Origin: Pavona decussata
Lineage: Eukaryota
NCBI GenBank assembly: GCA_977016875.1
Contig: CDRNST010000010.1
Location: forward strand, 2,666,001 to 2,730,000
Reading direction: 5' to 3'
Length of the DNA stretch: 64,000 nt
Part shown: piece by piece, positions 43,404-64,000 of the stretch
Position numbering within the stretch: the first letter of the stretch is position 1
Layout: every line of letters starts with the position of its first letter
Notes under the pieces: generated by a model
Seen by the model: only the letters and a program-made list of their open reading frames with translations
Databases searched by the model: none
What the model was told of the DNA's origin: nothing
Translations under genes and position numbers: made by a program

Positions 43404-46400
43404 ATGAACAGTGGGTGGATAGTAATATTCACGGTGAGTAAGTAAATGAACTAAACAACAGTCATAATTGAATCCCTACCTTATAGTTGATCCTTGGGAT
43501 TTTACAGCTCCGTTATTGGCCGACAGCACTTTTTGGGGTGACTCATTCAACAGGCACATGCGTTTGGATTAAATGTGCGCTTCTTTAAGGTCCTCACGCC
43601 AACAAGAAAAAAATTACTTTTCTTATTAATATTGATAACACATTTTGTCTTGAGTCGTGACATATTAGCGCAGATGGAATTTTTAGAAGTGCATCAGCAG
43701 TTCAAAAATCAATGAGACAAGATTCCATCCTTACAAAAATGTTCAGCTGCTAAAATATTCAGAAGAGGAATACGAAAATACTAGCTGGTTTTACCAACGG
43801 TTTAAAGTGCCCACGTTTCAACAACAAAATATCCAGTTTTCGTCTCAACCTTAAATAAATATCTGAGGTGATAATATTCATACGATCTAATAAACTGGAA
43901 TTTTATCGAGAATAATCTCATAAAGCTATTTATCATCAAATTCTAATTGATCAGCTTGGCATTTTTATCAGTTCATTTTAAGTAGAAAAACATGTTTGCA
44001 ATTTCAATTCAAGTAACTTGTTTTTCTTTAACGTAATTTCTTTCAGTGCTATCTGCACTGTTGATTCAAGAGTGCTGTTTCATGACTTTGTGATTCCTAA
44101 CTAATGCCGCTATTCGTGGCCATGAAGGGTTTGAAACTGTCATTATATTGATCATTATGATTGTTGCTGCCCTCGGCGAGAAATTTAGGGAGCGGACTTG
44201 GAAGAATTGCGATAATCGAAAAACTTGTAACGATTAGATTGTTCCATGGACTCAATAAACTTCAAAAAGGCTATTGAACGAGCCATAACGTTGGGTGGAT
44301 GGGATGAAAATGGATGCCAAGAAAAACTTTCTGTTACCTTTAACCTTTCCATTTTCTATTGACAGACCTGTACCAGTCTAATGGTCATGCTCTCTGGTAA
44401 GTCAATGCTATTTACTTATTTACTGGTCTGCAAGGTTTGGAGATAGCTGGTTACGTTGGGGCAGGGAGGGATCCAGCTAGAAATTTCAGTGTTCATGAAT
44501 TTCGCTAGTACTGGGCGTATAATCTGTCGTGAAACAAGATGACATCATAACTTCTTCGTGTTCNNNNNNNNNNNNNNNNNNNNNNNNNNNNNNNNNNNNN
44601 NNNNNNNNNNNNNNNNNNNNNNNNNNNNNNNNNNNNNNNNNNNNNNNNNNNNNNNNNNNNNNNNNNNNNNNNNNNNNNNNNNNNNNNNNNNNNNNNNNNN
44701 NNNNNNNNNNNNNNNNNNNNNTGTCTCCTTCTTTACAAATTCGTTTGATGAATTCAATAGGAGGAACACTTCAAAGCTCTATAACCAACAAACAATTAAA
44801 CATTCAAAGTTCCAAGTGCTACCTTTGACTGGACACTTTGTCCGCTGATCCTAGAGTATACGTTTCTATTTAGATCCGGGGTATGACAGGAAATATGGAT
44901 ACACTTCACATGAATGTGACCTTATCAGATTTATGGGAAGATGAAATAAAACTTCCTAGATTTGTGGGCGGATACAGTATGTCATGAGCGAGTCCTGGGA
45001 CTGTCAAAGTGATATATACTAATTAATCCCAAACAAGAAGTTTAAACCTGGGCCCAGCAATATTATTTTGTTGGCGTATGGTGGAGGATCAGATGAAACA
45101 GTGGCAGATATGGAGCCGTTTTGTCATTTATGAAGTTAAAAGAAGATAAAACCGGGGAAAAATCTTTGCAAAATGTTACACAGTTTGATCTCCTTACGCG
45201 AAAGGTATTCAATCAAAACTTAATGGGGGTGGGGTGGGGGCAATTGTTTTAAAATGGATCTCGATCCACTTCAATTTTGTTCATAACTTCTAAATAACAA
45301 ATACAACAAATCTCATTTACCAAGTTGAATTGACTATTTTTTGCCTTTTTGTCTGCAATTACTTTTGATCTTGCAGCGGGTAATTATTTGAAACTAGCTA
45401 ATGGAAACTTCAAAGGAGAAGGAAGAGTGGAAATTTTCTACAATGGCACCTGGGGAACTATTTGTGACGACAACTGGGATATGAAAGACGCGCATGTCGT
45501 TTGTTATGAACTTGGGTTCAGTAAGGCCCTTAGTGCTCCAACAAACGCCCGGTTTGGTGCAGGAAGTGGCCCCATATGGCTGGATGACGTGCAGTGCATG
45601 GGCGCTGAAAGTTCCTTGATGAATTGCCGGCACAATGGATGGAAAGTTCACAATTGTGGCCACCATGAAGATGCATCAGTGATCTGCTTAAGGAATTTAA
45701 GTATGGCAGTTATATTTTTGTACCCAAAAGAAAATTGTTTTGAAATAATTACATGCAAGAGAGTAATGTTTTGTTATTGTAATATCTGATCAAGGAAAAA
45801 GAATTGGATGAAATGCTGATCACATTCTAGAATCATATCTAATCCTTTAATTTAGTAAAAAGTGCGGGAAGTGAACGAAATGAATTGCCTACTGGCGTTG
45901 AACAGAAATGCGTGGACTGAAATCACATATGCAATTTAAGATAGCAGTGTAACCGCTTATGAACACAAGGTCGACAATCATAGTAACTGAATAGTTAGCA
46001 AGCGGTTTGACCAGTTAACCAGGGCAAATACCATGCAATAACAAGTTAAATTAATTACACTAGAATCCATGCTCCATCAAAGAACTTTGGTTCAAAATAG
46101 CTAAAACGGGAACTTAATATGCGTATCTTTCCAATGAAAGAAGGAAAAAATAATTCGAAGCAGTAGGATTGCTGAAAAATAAATTGAAAAGACACGTTTA
46201 CATATTTACTATTTAAGTTCCTTTTTCGAAAAAAATGATGAAAATTTCCATAGATTCGTAGAGTTAAACGGCGGGAGTTTACACATTAACAGGAATCCTG
46301 CACAAGATTGACTGTTTAAGAGGGTGTCCGCGTTGGAACGGATAAGGCAAATTTCGGCTTTTCACCGATTTCGCTGATTTTTTCTATGAACATCAATCTT

Positions 46401-49400
46401 TATATCCCATAAACCAATATCACATTTACTGAGCTCAATACGATTTTTTTCGTTGTTGGCGAGACGGTTTACAAGGTGACCTCAAAACCACCCAATTTAC
46501 TTTTTGGGAATCTACAATTTAGCTATACATTGTTGGTGCTGTCAAAACGCCATTCCTTGCTCAAAAACCTTGAATATTTTACACATTGACTGGAGTTCCA
46601 TTTATCAATAAGAATATAAATGTTTAACTTTTGGTTTCTGTGAAATTTTGACTGAGTTACAGTTTTTTCAAAATACCTCCTCCTAAACTTCAGAATACAT
46701 TAAACATGACATACATGTAGTTAAAGCCTATATGCACAAAAGTGGAACCTGACTTAGGGTCAAGTCTATTTTAACTCAAAAGCACTAACACCAATCTACT
46801 AATGTATGGAATAAAATTTGTGGGCACTCTTCGCTGCGTGCCGTACAGAGCTCCGCGATTTCCCTAATATTCACGGATTTCAATCGAAACTAAACATAAA
46901 GCCGTCAGACCGATAGAAATCGAACTCTTTGTAACCCGTCTCGCCAACAACGAAAAAAATCGTATTGGGCTCATTAACTGTGATATTTGCTTATAGGATA
47001 TAATGATTGAGGTTCATAAAAGAAATCAGGAAAATCGGTGAAAAGCCGAAATTTGCCTTATCCGTTCTCACGCAGACAGCCTCTTAACACTTGCAATTTT
47101 TGCAATTCCTGTTCCTGTTGCAGTTTTTTCCTTGGATTCTTATAACTGGCCATAATCTTGCTTGGTACTTCCTTGAAGTAATGTCATTGTAATCTTGTGT
47201 TTTAGAGGACAAAGTCCTTGGCCACTGGTTCTTGGATGGGCGAGACCAGAACATAAGGTTGGTCATGTAATTTGTCGATTTTTATAAGGGTGTTTCATAT
47301 CAAAGCTCTTAGGAATTGTATTCAACCGGTATTGTTGGGTTGGTTGTCCGCCATTAACATTTCCTTGGAAGGCAGCTGACTGTTTCTCAGTGTGCACGTT
47401 CGGTAAACCAGGTACGCCAATGAATGTCACAAGCGAGGGCTTGGTGGGGGAAGGGGGGGGGGGGGGGTGTTGGTGGTGGTGATTTGGTATAGAGTAACTA
47501 AATATATGTTCGTTTTCAAAAATTGGCAGTTAAATCCAGTTTAATGTGCTGTATTATTGTTAGATATCTTACGAAAAAAATCCCAATTCCTGATCAGCAG
47601 TTCAAGTTCAAACCATTTAAAGGTTGTCGGTTGACCCAGGGGGAGATATTGGGGACAATGAAAAACTCGAAACGGACGGGAAAAAAAGTTGGGAGGAAAA
47701 GTAAGAACGCCTGGGGACAGATTTTTTATAAACAAATTCCAATAGGCCGAGCAAATACTGGCTCTTGATTGGGCGGAAAAACTTTTGTATTTTTCTGCCA
47801 AATTGGCGAGCAACAAAAGGCCAAAGACCAGCACAAAGAACAACAAGAAAGCTAGTTTGCTTGCCATGTTTGCTATGCCCGTTCAACGAGAATTAAACTG
47901 AAGGGGAAAATCTCCGTCTCAAAGGCCAATATGTCAGAAAAATTATTCGCAATGGCTGAAGAAAAAGCGATGGAAAATACTGTGGAATTTTTAAAAACGT
48001 GTTCTAACAGTAGCGTTTTTTGAGAGGTTCCGAGTTTCCTGATTCGCCGATCAACAATCAAGGGATGCCGGAAAAAAATGTCAGCACTTTAAATCTTGCA
48101 AATGTTTTTTGATGGAAACTTTCCAAGACGGAGACGGGGAATTTCCCTTCAGTTCAATTCTCGTCGAACGGCGAGCAAACTCGCCATCTTGTTGTTCTTC
48201 GTGTTACAGCACACCAAATTGGTTTGTAGCCTTTGCTGCTTCGATTGGGCAGAAAGCTGAAAACAAAACTATTTTAGTCATCCCATGTATTTGATAGATA
48301 GATGAGAAAAATTGGATAACTGTGGGTTGAAACTAAAATCTCGATATTTGGTTGGGCTTTATATCTACAAATTTACATGAAAAGCTATCACTATAATTAA
48401 CTATGTAATGAATTATGGCTCTGTGTTTTCTCGTTACATACAAAGACAAGTATTAACAATTTTTTCCTTGCTTTTTTTAGTTTCAGTGGGTTGCCGCAGT
48501 TTATCGAAGGAAGGTGTCCTGGCAGTAAAGCTCCCATTTTCAACCAATCAAATTTCTTCGCCTCTGCCCCTAAAGTGAATTTCAATGGTTCCAGTTTCAC
48601 GATCTCCTGCTGGATAAAACAAACGAAATACAGACAGATGGGGGTGATTTATGGAGACTGGCATTACCCTCGCGGGCAGTTTCTGCTTAGCGCTGCCAAT
48701 CAAAGTATTGTATTCTATCGTCACAGCATCGTAAACAACGACTGGTGGTCGTTGCAAAGTACCAACCTTTCTTTGATTGACTGGACACATGTTGTGGTCA
48801 CGTGGCATCACGTCACTCGGAATGTGGCAATCTATGCTAACGGTAAAGAAGTAGGCAGGAGGATGTATTCTCCAAAGGAAACATTCTACGGACCCACGGG
48901 GAAGCCTTTCATGATTGGTAATGACGGCCTTACACTTGACCACCAGTTCTACGGATCAGTGATGGATCTTTACGTATTTCACGAGGCGTTATTGTTGGAT
49001 GAAATCAACGTGATAAGAGGTGTGAGGTTTATGGCATTTCCTAGTGATAAATACTGAACATTTTCAAATTTAAAAGAAAAATGTTAACTTGCAGGGCTGT
49101 TTCATTAAAAAAATTCCTTTTCTGCATGGAAAGACAGTATTAGACATTTCAAATCCACGCTTATGAATGGTCTGGCGACGCGGTGAATCTCCTTTCATTT
49201 CATACTTTTGCCCCATTTACGGAATAATAAAACTTTTGAAGACTTAATACAACACTTCCTTTTGGTATGAGTGGAATTGGCTGAATTTTCTTTAATACCA
49301 CCTAAATTATTAGTTTTGATTGATTGATAGCTTTGGATTCTTGTAATAAAGCTATAAGCGCTATAATCTTTTGGTACCGTGTGACTGTCATACCTAATCG

Positions 49401-52400
49401 TACCTTTTTGGCTCGCCGTGGGTATTTTGGCTTGACGGAGGGCGATAAGCTATTTACAGTACCCAAATCCAGACCAAATCCTGGTGATATTTTTAGAGTT
49501 TACATTAATAAAATCTGCCAGGCGACCTTCGTGTGGCCCACAAAGAGAATAATACGGCGGAGTCAACAAACGACGCAAAAAGTGATGAATGTAGCATCCT
49601 ACATTGACAACAATGATAAAATTGCGATTTAACAAACGAATAAAGACGATTGAACAAATATCCTTGAATGGATCTTTTTTAGGTGTTCCAGTGATCGATA
49701 GCCAAGGTAATGTCAATGAAGTTGAAGGAGGAGCCATTGCAGTGAAATGGCAGCCTCTCTTGGAAGACGTCTGTCAAGTCGAGCAGCACAAAGTCTACTA
49801 CAGAGAAATCTTTTCACAGGCAAACAAAGGCAAATGGAGCTCGGTTACTGTTAATAGAAATGCGACAAGCTACATCCTGCACCTTCACTGTTGGAAAGAA
49901 TATGAAATAGCGGTTACGTCTCTAAATTCAAATGGAGAGAGTTCGATCAATGACAGAGAGGTGTGGAAATTCAGAACACTAGGAGGTAATTTATGATGGT
50001 TCTTTTAACATCAGTTCCTGTCAAATTAAAGGTTCCCTTGAAATGAAAGAAAATAATACTGTCTAACAATGATGTCAGTTCAGTCAAGGTAACTGAAGTT
50101 CATGTAACAAGCAGTGCGGAAATTAACTTAAAAGGCATTAGATAATAGTTAGACTCAATAGTTCTCTGGTCACCATATACTAGCCTAAAATACAGACTTA
50201 CTTTTGGCGGGAGAACTGGTATATTCTATTCTCCAGCTAGCATCTTGACTTGGAGAAATCATGTGAATTGATTCGAGTTTACCAAAGGAACACCATCTGC
50301 CATTAAATAAGCTCATTTCCGATAGACTTATCTGAGAGGGCACACAAGTCCGCTAAAAGCTATTCGTTGATACAAACCAAGAATAACTCTTCGGCTTATT
50401 GTGAAGTAGAACTATACTACTAGACGCATTTAGCAACAGCTGATATTTTTGGTTCCAGGAGATAACTGCTGTGTTGAAGCTAATTTTCAAAGTCAATCAG
50501 GATGGGTAAATTGCTCCCTGGGAAGATACCTGAATGGAGTCTGGAAAAACTTGTCTGGAAAAAGTGATGGCATGGACCATGTCACAAAAGGGAGATGCTG
50601 CACACCTCCACAGGAATACCAAGATGAAACACTTGTTTGTCAAACAGCAGACTGGAAAACTCCTCTAAGCAGGTCAGTAAAGTTAGTGACTTTAAATTGG
50701 TCTTAAGTATTGAAGAAAGTTCTGCTTCTTGCGAGGCTCAATTTGCAAGAACGCCTATGTTGTCGTTAAGGCAGCAAATTATCCCCGAGATAATTTGATT
50801 TTCGAATACTCTTCTCTTGATCTAGCTTTATTGATGCAATGGATCTGTGACGTGGGCTGTTGATTAGAACATCAATGTAATTATTTTCCGTTTTTATCGG
50901 GGTCCGAGTATTTTCTTTGAACTGAACGGTTAAGTTTCTTTGGAAATCAAATTAAAAATCAAGCAACTAACCGCATTTTAAATAGAAGAAAGACCCTCGC
51001 AGTTATTTACGCAACTAACGAGTTGCGAAAAGAAAGCCTGAAAAAATTTAGGTTTGAACTGGTTTCGCACCCATGACCTCTGCGATGCAGATATAGCCGG
51101 CTCTACCAACTAAACTATCAAGCAAACTGGGAGCTGGTCATATTGTGAGTTCGTAATGTAGGCGTGAAGGATGAATGAATGGACATTTATATAGGAAACT
51201 ATTATTTTAACTGCGGGTGAAAGATCAAATTTAGGTTTCATATGTTCATATTCATTTAACCACATTTTGCGCGACTATATTTTTTCTTTCCAAACCTAGC
51301 AACCACATCTGGGCTGTCTGTCCTCACGGATATTTTCTTCAAGGATTTTACCGCTCTGATGATACTGGGACTGGGCTGCATAACATCAAGCAAGCAACAT
51401 GCTGCAGGCCTAGAAACTTCAAAACCGTTCCCCTGGACTGCTATGATCACAATGTGACGGTTTTAGTTGCTAAAACAGGCTGGAGTAAATGTCAAGACTG
51501 GTCCTATCTAGCCGGTGTATATAAGGGAGTCTGTGACAAGTTTCACTGTATTGAAACTTTCAGATGCTGTAGGATGCCTCCCTCAGGTATCTGTGCACTG
51601 TATACACTGTTGTGCCAATTTACAAACATGAATCCACGCTCTATCTTAAATTTCTCTAAGTTCCTATTTCAATAAGATTGCGTATAAATAATCTGAATTA
51701 TACATATAAACTCCAAAGTGTACGGATCATAAAGTCTTGCTATTTTGGGCAGAATTTCTTTGATCCAGCGTTTCTAGACTGGATCAGAAGTTGAGACAAG
51801 GGATCAGGAGCCCCCCTTTAATGAGTGTAGGACATTTTTAGATGCACCTAAGCTAAAGCCAAGATTAACTCACTATAGTACAAACATTACGCAAGGACAC
51901 ATGATAATGACCCCAACTAACGTTTTTGTACCTGTTGCTGCATTTTTAGAGATGATTGTCCTTGGCCACTGGAAGCTAGATGGCAGCGATCAGGACATAA
52001 GGTTGGTCAATTACTATATATTTGAGCGACCAGTAAAACCTTATAGTTTTTTGTAGGAAAAAAGTTCGTTGAAATTGAACTATATATGTTTCGAACAACA
52101 TAATCCTGTTCAAGGTTGACATGTAAGTCATTTTAGCTAAATTAAGAATAAAAAAAATCGCCAACCGTTGTTTGTCACCATAACTGACTGTTCATACGTC
52201 TCTGAAATACGGATAAAATGGTACTTGGCATCGGATTGGGTTTTGATCATCAACGTTAATAACTGCGAATAGAAAAATACTAATCAATTTCCTGAAGGGA
52301 TTTTTGAAAGAAGGTTACACTTTTTAAATGGAGTACTTTTTTTAAGGTTGTACAGTTACACGTTTATAAGCTTTTTTTTTCCTATGTCAGTTTCAGTGGT

Positions 52401-63278: not shown

Positions 63279-64000
63279 GTAAGTGTTGTGACATGTATCT
63301 TAATTAGCCATGTAGAAACTGTTACCCAGTAACAAGCATTAAGAGTTCTATATATTTTGCACAATAGGAAATGTTTGTGCATCAGCTAAGATACGTCTAC
63401 CTCTACGAGCAAGCAAGATCAAGCAAAATGCTGGGGTGTGATTGTGCGTTAGTTCGGCAGTCCATGAGAAATGTATTTTGTACTATTTTCTATTTTTTTT
63501 CGGGCAAGGCGCGCACCGACGTTGAAAGCACTAGTGTATGACCTTTTTTCATATTTGTTCAATGAAACTTGTATTTTTTGTATGAAGGAGCCTCTGCGGA
63601 GGAGAGAGTTGCAATAGTACCCTCGCAGTTATAGAGAGGGGTGGGCTATATCCGTCTAATATGGATCACAAAACATGGCCAGTCTAGATTACATTGCGTT
63701 ATTAGTAGAAATCTGGAAGGAAATGCGGGTGGAGATTTCGTCAACACACTCAACAATGCAGGCGCAATGATCGACTTCTAAAACTCTAACTCTGGATTCT
63801 TTTGTAATTTTCAAAAAAATATCTCTGTGTAGGTCGTCAGCCATGTTGGGCCGGGGGTTATCTTTCTTCATGTACAGTAATGATGTGTTTTTCTTTTCTG
63901 GACAGTTTTTCCTTTATGTTGTTAGTTTTAATTCTTCTTTAATTTGTATGCCATTTCACGAAAGTCTAGCCTAGAACACGAAGATTATTCATGGACATTT

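Follow-up and report, generated by a model that had tools for sequence, protein, structure and literature searches.

A biomphalysin small-lobe-type domain encoded by a two-exon cassette in a predicted receptor tyrosine kinase gene of Pavona decussata

The stretch of DNA that we analyzed, called the window from here on, is 64,000 nucleotides (nt) long and corresponds to C10:2666001-2730000 in the 602-Mb assembly of Pavona decussata (GCA_977016875.1; C10 is our short name for contig CDRNST010000010.1). It carries two tandem copies of a receptor tyrosine kinase (RTK) gene, and our subject is a pair of exons in the downstream copy that together encode a single domain of the predicted ectodomain. 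We refer to this pair as the cassette. A first-pass annotation, made from the sequence alone, had proposed that these exons encode a Cys-rich domain like the small lobe of the pore-forming toxin biomphalysin, and the analysis described here follows up that proposal. The features of the downstream gene, together with the cassette of the upstream copy, are as follows, with positions numbered from the start of the window.

45349-45720, plus strand: SRCR exon (Pfam PF00530, E 6e-36)
48491-49057, plus strand: first LamG_3 (concanavalin A-like) exon (Pfam PF13385, E 2.6e-18)
49604-49985, plus strand: FN3 exon directly upstream of the cassette, ending in phase 1; its start is the limit of the open frame and is approximate
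50459-50672, plus strand: cassette exon 1, 214 nt, AG acceptor at 50457-58 and GT donor at 50673-74, starting in phase 1 and ending in phase 2
50673-51299, plus strand: cassette intron, phase 2, splitting repeat 2 of the domain
51300-51586, plus strand: cassette exon 2, 287 nt, with AG acceptor and GT donor, ending in phase 1
51950-52001, plus strand: mini-exon of 52 nt encoding the first strand of the second LamG_3 domain, going from phase 1 to phase 2
52397-53009, plus strand: second LamG_3 exon (Pfam PF13385, E 1.2e-21); the 3' end is approximate
53447-53680, plus strand: FN3-like exon, recognized by similarity to other FN3 exons, with no Pfam match when taken alone
54557-54820, plus strand: FN3 exon (Pfam PF00041 / PF25059)
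about 56045-56110, plus strand: single transmembrane segment from a hydropathy scan, a hydrophobic 21-mer followed by the basic stop-transfer sequence KKVVKKK
59955-60098, plus strand: tyrosine kinase exon, N-lobe part (Pfam PF07714, E 4e-8)
63073-63282, plus strand: tyrosine kinase exon with the catalytic loop HRDLAARN (Pfam PF07714, E 1e-26)
2975-3188, plus strand: cassette exon 1 of the upstream tandem paralogue, 80% protein identity to 50461-50670
3795-4075, plus strand: cassette exon 2 of the upstream tandem paralogue, open, 75% protein identity

Read in order, the same-strand open frames give SRCR, LamG_3, FN3, the cassette, LamG_3, FN3, FN3, a transmembrane segment and the tyrosine kinase. 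The gene had been called an RTK from the start, and at the level of exons this held up, with PF07714 kinase exons, the HRDLAARN loop and one transmembrane segment. The upstream paralogue has a counterpart of that segment near 12449.

Repeat 2 of the small-lobe-type domain is divided between the two exons of the cassette: exon 1 encodes its first half, after repeat 1, and exon 2 encodes the other half, followed by repeat 3. The intron between them lies five residues plus 2 nt past a conserved DW. Joined, the two exons are 501 nt long, or 167 codons without a stop, and their translations contain 15 Cys and three repeats with the pattern C..(A/D)W....(G)W..C..GY..G.Y......L..I....CC, so the Cys-rich, three-repeat unit of about 165 residues that had been described is indeed there. 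The protein stretch that had been quoted as resembling biomphalysin is also present; when the exons are read one by one, it spans the exon junction.

The cassette fits the frame of its neighbors. The FN3 exon leaves a codon open at 49985 (phase 1), and this codon is completed by cassette exon 1. At the other end there is a mismatch between exon 2, with its phase-1 end, and the large LamG exon, which begins in phase 2; the 52-nt mini-exon restores the frame by shifting phase 1 to phase 2. The cassette as a whole is therefore a phase 1-1 symmetric unit sitting between phase-1 introns. Such symmetry is a classic mark of shuffled extracellular modules. Each LamG_3 domain in this gene apparently begins with a separate mini-exon of about 52 nt (..LGHWKLDG..), and a counterpart for the first one is expected upstream of 48487. 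A mini-exon of this kind is easily missed in gene models, and leaving it out would break the frame. In the cassette intron, the part at 50960-51140 looks by eye like a tRNA-derived repeat, with a similar stretch at 3520-3620 in the intron of the paralogue; ARAGORN called no tRNA gene in the cassette intron.

The cassette of the upstream paralogue totals 495 nt and is open as well, so the domain is intact in both copies, as the first-pass annotation had said. In the second LamG_3 exon of that paralogue (5543-6160) there are two in-frame TAA codons between the open reading frames (ORFs) at 5543-5743 and 5861-6160. The region between the two receptor genes holds a retroelement-like insertion with long open frames (23046-26073, minus strand), which includes an ORF of 655 residues with reverse-transcriptase-like motifs.

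For homology searches we took the exons singly rather than as a joined domain. Profile A1, built from 15 translations of exon 2 in this genome, was run against 1.84 billion representative proteins, and E-values for toxins are scaled to Z 1.84e9. At E <= 1e-3 it matched 667 representatives, of which 402 also passed E <= 1e-10. Several matching proteins of 515-658 residues aligned at approximately residues 90-190 and had a Pfam Aerolysin domain C-terminal to the aligned region; physalysin of Physella acuta (E 3e-28) and three proteins from Lymnaea stagnalis are among the matches that carry Aerolysin. The biomphalysins matched with E-values of 5e-25 (Biomphalysin 10), 1.2e-17 (Biomphalysin 1, residues 93-187), 1.8e-17 (Biomphalysin 3), 5.5e-16 (Biomphalysin 2) and 4.6e-15 (Biomphalysin 22), and the aerolysins of Nematostella and Dendronephthya with E-values of 1e-34 to 1e-38 (about 1e-37 for Nematostella). 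All of the matches to toxins lie inside the toxin N-terminal lobe. With BLASTP, exon 2 was 32% identical to Biomphalysin 1 (E 6e-15) and 45% identical to the Nematostella aerolysin (E 4e-28). A profile for exon 1, made from receptor copies only, gave a co-linear match to residues 22-92 of the Nematostella aerolysin (E 2.4e-8 at Z 1.84e9) and weak matches to the snail toxins. None of three prokaryotic aerolysin-family proteins (the one named is from Sphingomonas) matched profile A1. No Pfam family matched either exon or the full domains of homologues, and a profile search of the PDB sequences found no match.

The closest contiguous protein is Stylophora pistillata XP_022781842.1 (P0016), which is 41% identical to exon 1 and 52% identical to exon 2 and in which the regions matching the two exons are joined at the same point. 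We modeled residues 59-226 of P0016 from a 73-sequence alignment, and this model stands in for the window domain. It has a predicted local distance difference test score (pLDDT) of 93.6, a predicted template modeling score (pTM) of 0.88 and 12 strands arranged as 3 x 4, which is the three-fold beta-prism that had been expected, as seen in a proxy homologue. Domain I of biomphalysin, modeled with AlphaFold2, has been described as a beta-prism with pseudo-3-fold symmetry and six disulfides at residues 1-165 (PMC12186885), and the P0016 model agrees with this description. In the ESM Atlas, the model matched the N-terminal lobe of a 74-member cluster of mollusc aerolysin-like proteins over all 168 residues with a template modeling (TM) score of 0.95 and a root-mean-square deviation of 1.3 A. 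Cnidarian EGF proteins followed at TM 0.90, while bacterial proteins, some of them joined to GH5 or BACON modules, came in at approximately TM 0.7 and dermatopontin-family proteins at 0.69-0.70. Across the 73 domains, four Cys columns are invariant and three more are nearly so. Solved structures gave weak fold matches (the PCSK9 C-terminal domain at E 3.5e-3, Vip3A at Z 5.4), with none at E <= 0.001 in Foldseek, and the PDB copy that we searched contains no experimental structure of this domain family.

With a profile E-value of 1.2e-17, 32% identity in BLASTP and a fold match at TM 0.95, the proposed homology to the N-terminal small lobe of biomphalysin was borne out. We regard it as confirmed that the window domain is homologous to domain I (the "small lobe") of biomphalysin, physalysin and the cnidarian aerolysins. 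The two are alike in sequence family (E 1e-15 to 1e-37), in size (about 165-170 residues), in the modeled three-repeat beta-prism and apparently in conserved Cys and CC pairs. They also differ in several ways. The receptor has no aerolysin domain, and its module is internal, between FN3 and LamG_3 in a predicted membrane receptor with a kinase. Compared with toxin domain I, the window domain has a more degenerate repeat 1, and it has 15 Cys where domain I of Biomphalysin 1 has 12. Biomphalysin genes are intronless (PMC8047071), whereas here the domain is a two-exon cassette.

The same genome has toxin genes of its own. Two aerolysin-like genes matching PF01117 lie on another contig (C305) and point away from each other.

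C305:286000-294000, minus strand: aerolysin-like gene L024
C305:297000-304500, plus strand: aerolysin-like gene L025

In both genes, the aerolysin part is preceded by two exons that encode a small lobe. In L024, a signal-peptide-like start and repeat 1 run from 6943 to about 6652, the rest of the lobe is at about 5752-5434, and the aerolysin ORF is at 3756-2263; the six-frame match contains one TGA, which may be intronic or exonic. An intron in phase 2 that interrupts repeat 2, five residues and 2 nt past DW, is common to both toxin genes and the receptor, and it is also found in a receptor-type gene of another species (GCA_044670265.1). Since position and phase are both shared, receptor and toxin genes have the exon structure of the module in common in addition to its fold. 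All matches to PF01117 in this genome are on C305 and none are in the window. The receptor gene is therefore not a toxin and shares the lobe alone, and the earlier statement that no aerolysin pore-forming domain is present here was correct.

We found at least 38 matches to exon 2 in the genome, along with 44 matches to the LamG exon and about 23 kinase exons that are at least 81% identical to that of the window. By comparing coordinates, we located a same-strand kinase exon of this subfamily (>=81% identity) 6-28 kb downstream of at least 15 of the exon-2 copies, on contigs C10 (two copies), C58, C51, C151, C382, C175, C2, C380, C54 and C37. Several family kinase genes have a nearby LamG exon and no cassette match, so the cassette appears to be variable among the paralogues. 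In 11 of the 11 paralogues that we examined, AG and GT are present at all four boundaries and the cassette is 495-507 nt long, always a multiple of three. Together with the number of copies, this goes well beyond what chance would give. Pairwise ratios of nonsynonymous to synonymous substitution rates (dN/dS) for the cassette exons are mostly 0.25-0.8 with a median near 0.4, compared with 0.14 for the kinase exon. From these values we conclude that the cassette is maintained by purifying selection, though under weaker constraint than the kinase; at the level of whole exons, the ratios gave no signal of positive selection.

More divergent copies of the domain (43-51% identical) occur in dense arrays at C60:3479051-3538236, C239:300188-303024 and C2:2886194-2922814. 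These arrays do not adjoin kinase exons of this receptor family. At one array locus (L019), a single exon spans the end of one domain and the start of the next, a layout that suggests secreted multi-domain proteins.

Receptor-type ectodomains with this domain are not private to one genome. A 10.3-kb contig of GCA_044670265.1, which is at most 73% identical to this genome at the nucleotide level and in exons only, has the domain twice between FN3 and LamG exons that are less than 1 kb away. The order on that contig is domain, mini-exon, LamG, FN3, domain, mini-exon, LamG, FN3, FN3 and transmembrane segment, and the contig ends before any kinase could appear. The wider family is joined to many other partners. 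In Xenia, Oculina, Acropora, Montipora, Pocillopora and Porites the domain occurs with EGF arrays, and in Pocillopora with the GAIN, GPS and 7TM parts of an adhesion G-protein-coupled receptor; TSP1, VWD, WSC and PAN are partners as well. The hosts are corals, octocorals, snails and a dinoflagellate transcriptome. The dinoflagellate entry (P0150, from the Gymnodinium smaydae transcriptome in EukProt) has 1142 residues, with the domain at 58-215 and a weak MACPF match downstream. Contamination is possible in this case; if real, it would be a second pore-forming family joined to the domain. Public records name the domain-bearing proteins uromodulin-like, Notch-like, fibropellin-like or roundabout-like, and the domain itself is unannotated. 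Because it is joined to so many varied architectures, we take it to be a general extracellular recognition module.

For the exon-2 region, we also built a maximum-likelihood tree from 45 rows and 92 columns. In it, the receptor copies group with Stylophora P0016 in a clade of their own (support 99/96), which does not fall within the toxin copies. The toxin lobes do not make up a monophyletic group, and the deep branching order is poorly supported. With 92 columns, this tree cannot show a donor.

Several known systems resemble the window gene in part. The Sweet Tooth (SWT) RTKs of Hydra, like the window gene, are expanded in cnidarians and have ectodomains made of beta-sandwich modules that are lectin-like. 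For the SWT domains, a resemblance to legume lectins and pentraxin has been predicted (PMC3531485). The window gene has two LamG_3/pentraxin-like modules, and we set it beside Sweet Tooth by description, not by sequence. The papers on Sweet Tooth that we consulted describe no small-lobe-type domain. The SRCR domain and the beta-prism cassette are extra in the window gene. Dermatopontin and hemagglutinin-amebocyte aggregation factor (PF14704) are similarly small, disulfide-rich and extracellular, with internal repeats, a fold match near TM 0.7 and a short motif in common, but they have no significant sequence or profile relation to the domain, and the true dermatopontin (DERM) genes of this genome are at other loci. 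The beta-prism I lectins (the jacalin-like proteins ZG16, WGA16 and SALT) and the Vip3 beta-prism also consist of three four-stranded sheets around a pseudo-three-fold axis, a comparison that the authors of the biomphalysin model make too (PMC12186885). However, the structural match to these is weak, there is no sequence similarity, and they are not stapled by disulfides in the same way.

Taking everything together, we think it probable that the cassette is a shuffled beta-prism module which binds ligand in an RTK ectodomain and belongs to a promiscuous domain family. The cassette would be a phase 1-1 exon-shuffled unit encoding a disulfide-rich beta-prism of three four-stranded repeats, carried in its ectodomain by one member of an RTK family that is expanded in corals. 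The domain would bind an extracellular ligand, most likely a glycan or another surface ligand, and clustering of the receptor would relay ligand occupancy to the kinase, as it does in other RTKs. A lectin-like role is suggested by analogy, from the beta-prism shape, the role proposed for the toxin lobe (PMC8047071, PMC12186885) and the carbohydrate-enzyme context of the bacterial look-alikes.

A number of observations weigh against this interpretation. That the cassette and the kinase are on one mRNA is argued from splice phases and conserved order, and we located no signal peptide for the receptor gene. The 1-1 symmetry of the cassette would allow transcripts to skip it without loss of frame. 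Among the best 150 of the 667 representatives there is no annotated full-length RTK with the domain (the Pfam scan covered 30 of these 150, including all longer than 600 residues). Long proteins were also searched with a domain from Oculina, again without finding an RTK; this search used a shared-exact-word method that may have missed some. The Stylophora homologue is annotated as a protein of 230 residues that ends just past the domain, not as an RTK. The fold assigned to the window domain is a prediction carried over from this homologue at 41% and 52% identity, and solved jacalin-like lectins are weak fold matches (Z 2.0-2.4). Finally, the upstream paralogue may be a pseudogene or be spliced differently, though its cassette is open.

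The first-pass annotation had gone further and read the locus as a toxin targeting module wired to a kinase as a sensor. The homology and the kinase gene stand; the toxin origin does not fare as well. If the module was first a targeting lobe in a toxin of the aerolysin type and was later copied from a toxin gene into a kinase gene, the receptor would be a sensor with the specificity of the toxin. Toxin genes that share the lobe and the position and phase of its intron do occur in the genome, and a phase 1-1 cassette delimited by exon boundaries has the form that exon shuffling requires. But the receptor clade is not nested in the toxin copies, the toxin lobes do not group together in the tree, and the non-toxin architectures among the 667 representatives are many and varied. 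In addition, the tested prokaryotic aerolysin-family proteins do not have the lobe, and therefore the toxin itself must have acquired it. We consider an origin in the toxin unlikely. Most likely, there was a common pool from which the module was taken up separately by the receptor kinases and by the aerolysin, itself acquired horizontally, so that neither got it from the other and no part of a toxin was lent to a kinase.

It could also be that the two exons are outside the kinase transcript altogether, as a nested gene for a small secreted protein or as unused relic exons. The 230-residue Stylophora protein, which ends a few residues past the domain, would fit a separate gene; its ending resembles read-through into the homologous intron. 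In the window, exon 1 starts at a splice acceptor, lacks its own ATG and signal peptide and continues the frame of the FN3 exon, exon 2 is in frame with LamG_3 by way of the conserved mini-exon, and the same order is found in at least 15 paralogues and another species. Relic exons would not be expected to have a dN/dS of about 0.4 and intact splice sites. For these reasons we judge a location outside the kinase transcript to be very unlikely. We have even less belief in the domain being a divergent dermatopontin (DERM, PF14704), and so an adhesion module like those of matrix proteins. DERM is carried by 16-23% of the members in ESM Atlas feature matches, the structures are similar at TM 0.69-0.70, and the motif type (F/Y)D..(G)W..C...GY(I/L).G is shared. 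However, the Pfam model does not match the domain at E <= 1 to 10 and its matches in the genome are at other loci only, the profile-profile probability from hhalign is 8%, and a TM of 0.7 compares with 0.95 to the toxin lobes.

A more speculative extension of the ligand-binding interpretation concerns the two C305 genes. With the same module on a secreted pore-forming effector and on receptor kinases, the two could be a matched sensor-effector pair reading one surface ligand, with the lobe as an ancient glycan-binding beta-prism family. Possible targets would be microbes, symbionts, prey or neighbouring colonies. In its wider form, a family of marine eukaryotes would have been captured by the horizontally acquired aerolysin in place of the bacterial APT domain. 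We give this proposal, with its targets and its wider form included, a small but real chance of being right.

In the open-access literature on aerolysin and dermatopontin, on SWT and on coral RTK ectodomains we found no RTK described with this domain, in line with what had been supposed. What is new is an undescribed RTK ectodomain module, which also defines an unnamed domain family. The biomphalysin small lobe is thought to decide the targets of an immune toxin (PMC8047071, PMC12186885). This lobe has no Pfam model, and as a mobile domain it defines a new extracellular domain family, so that the question shifts from toxin targeting to a general recognition module. Soluble, non-toxic members of the family could serve for measuring binding specificity. 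For coral biology, the domain is a candidate ligand-binding part in a large, lineage-expanded family of receptor kinases, and such a family could sense microbes, symbionts or neighbours.

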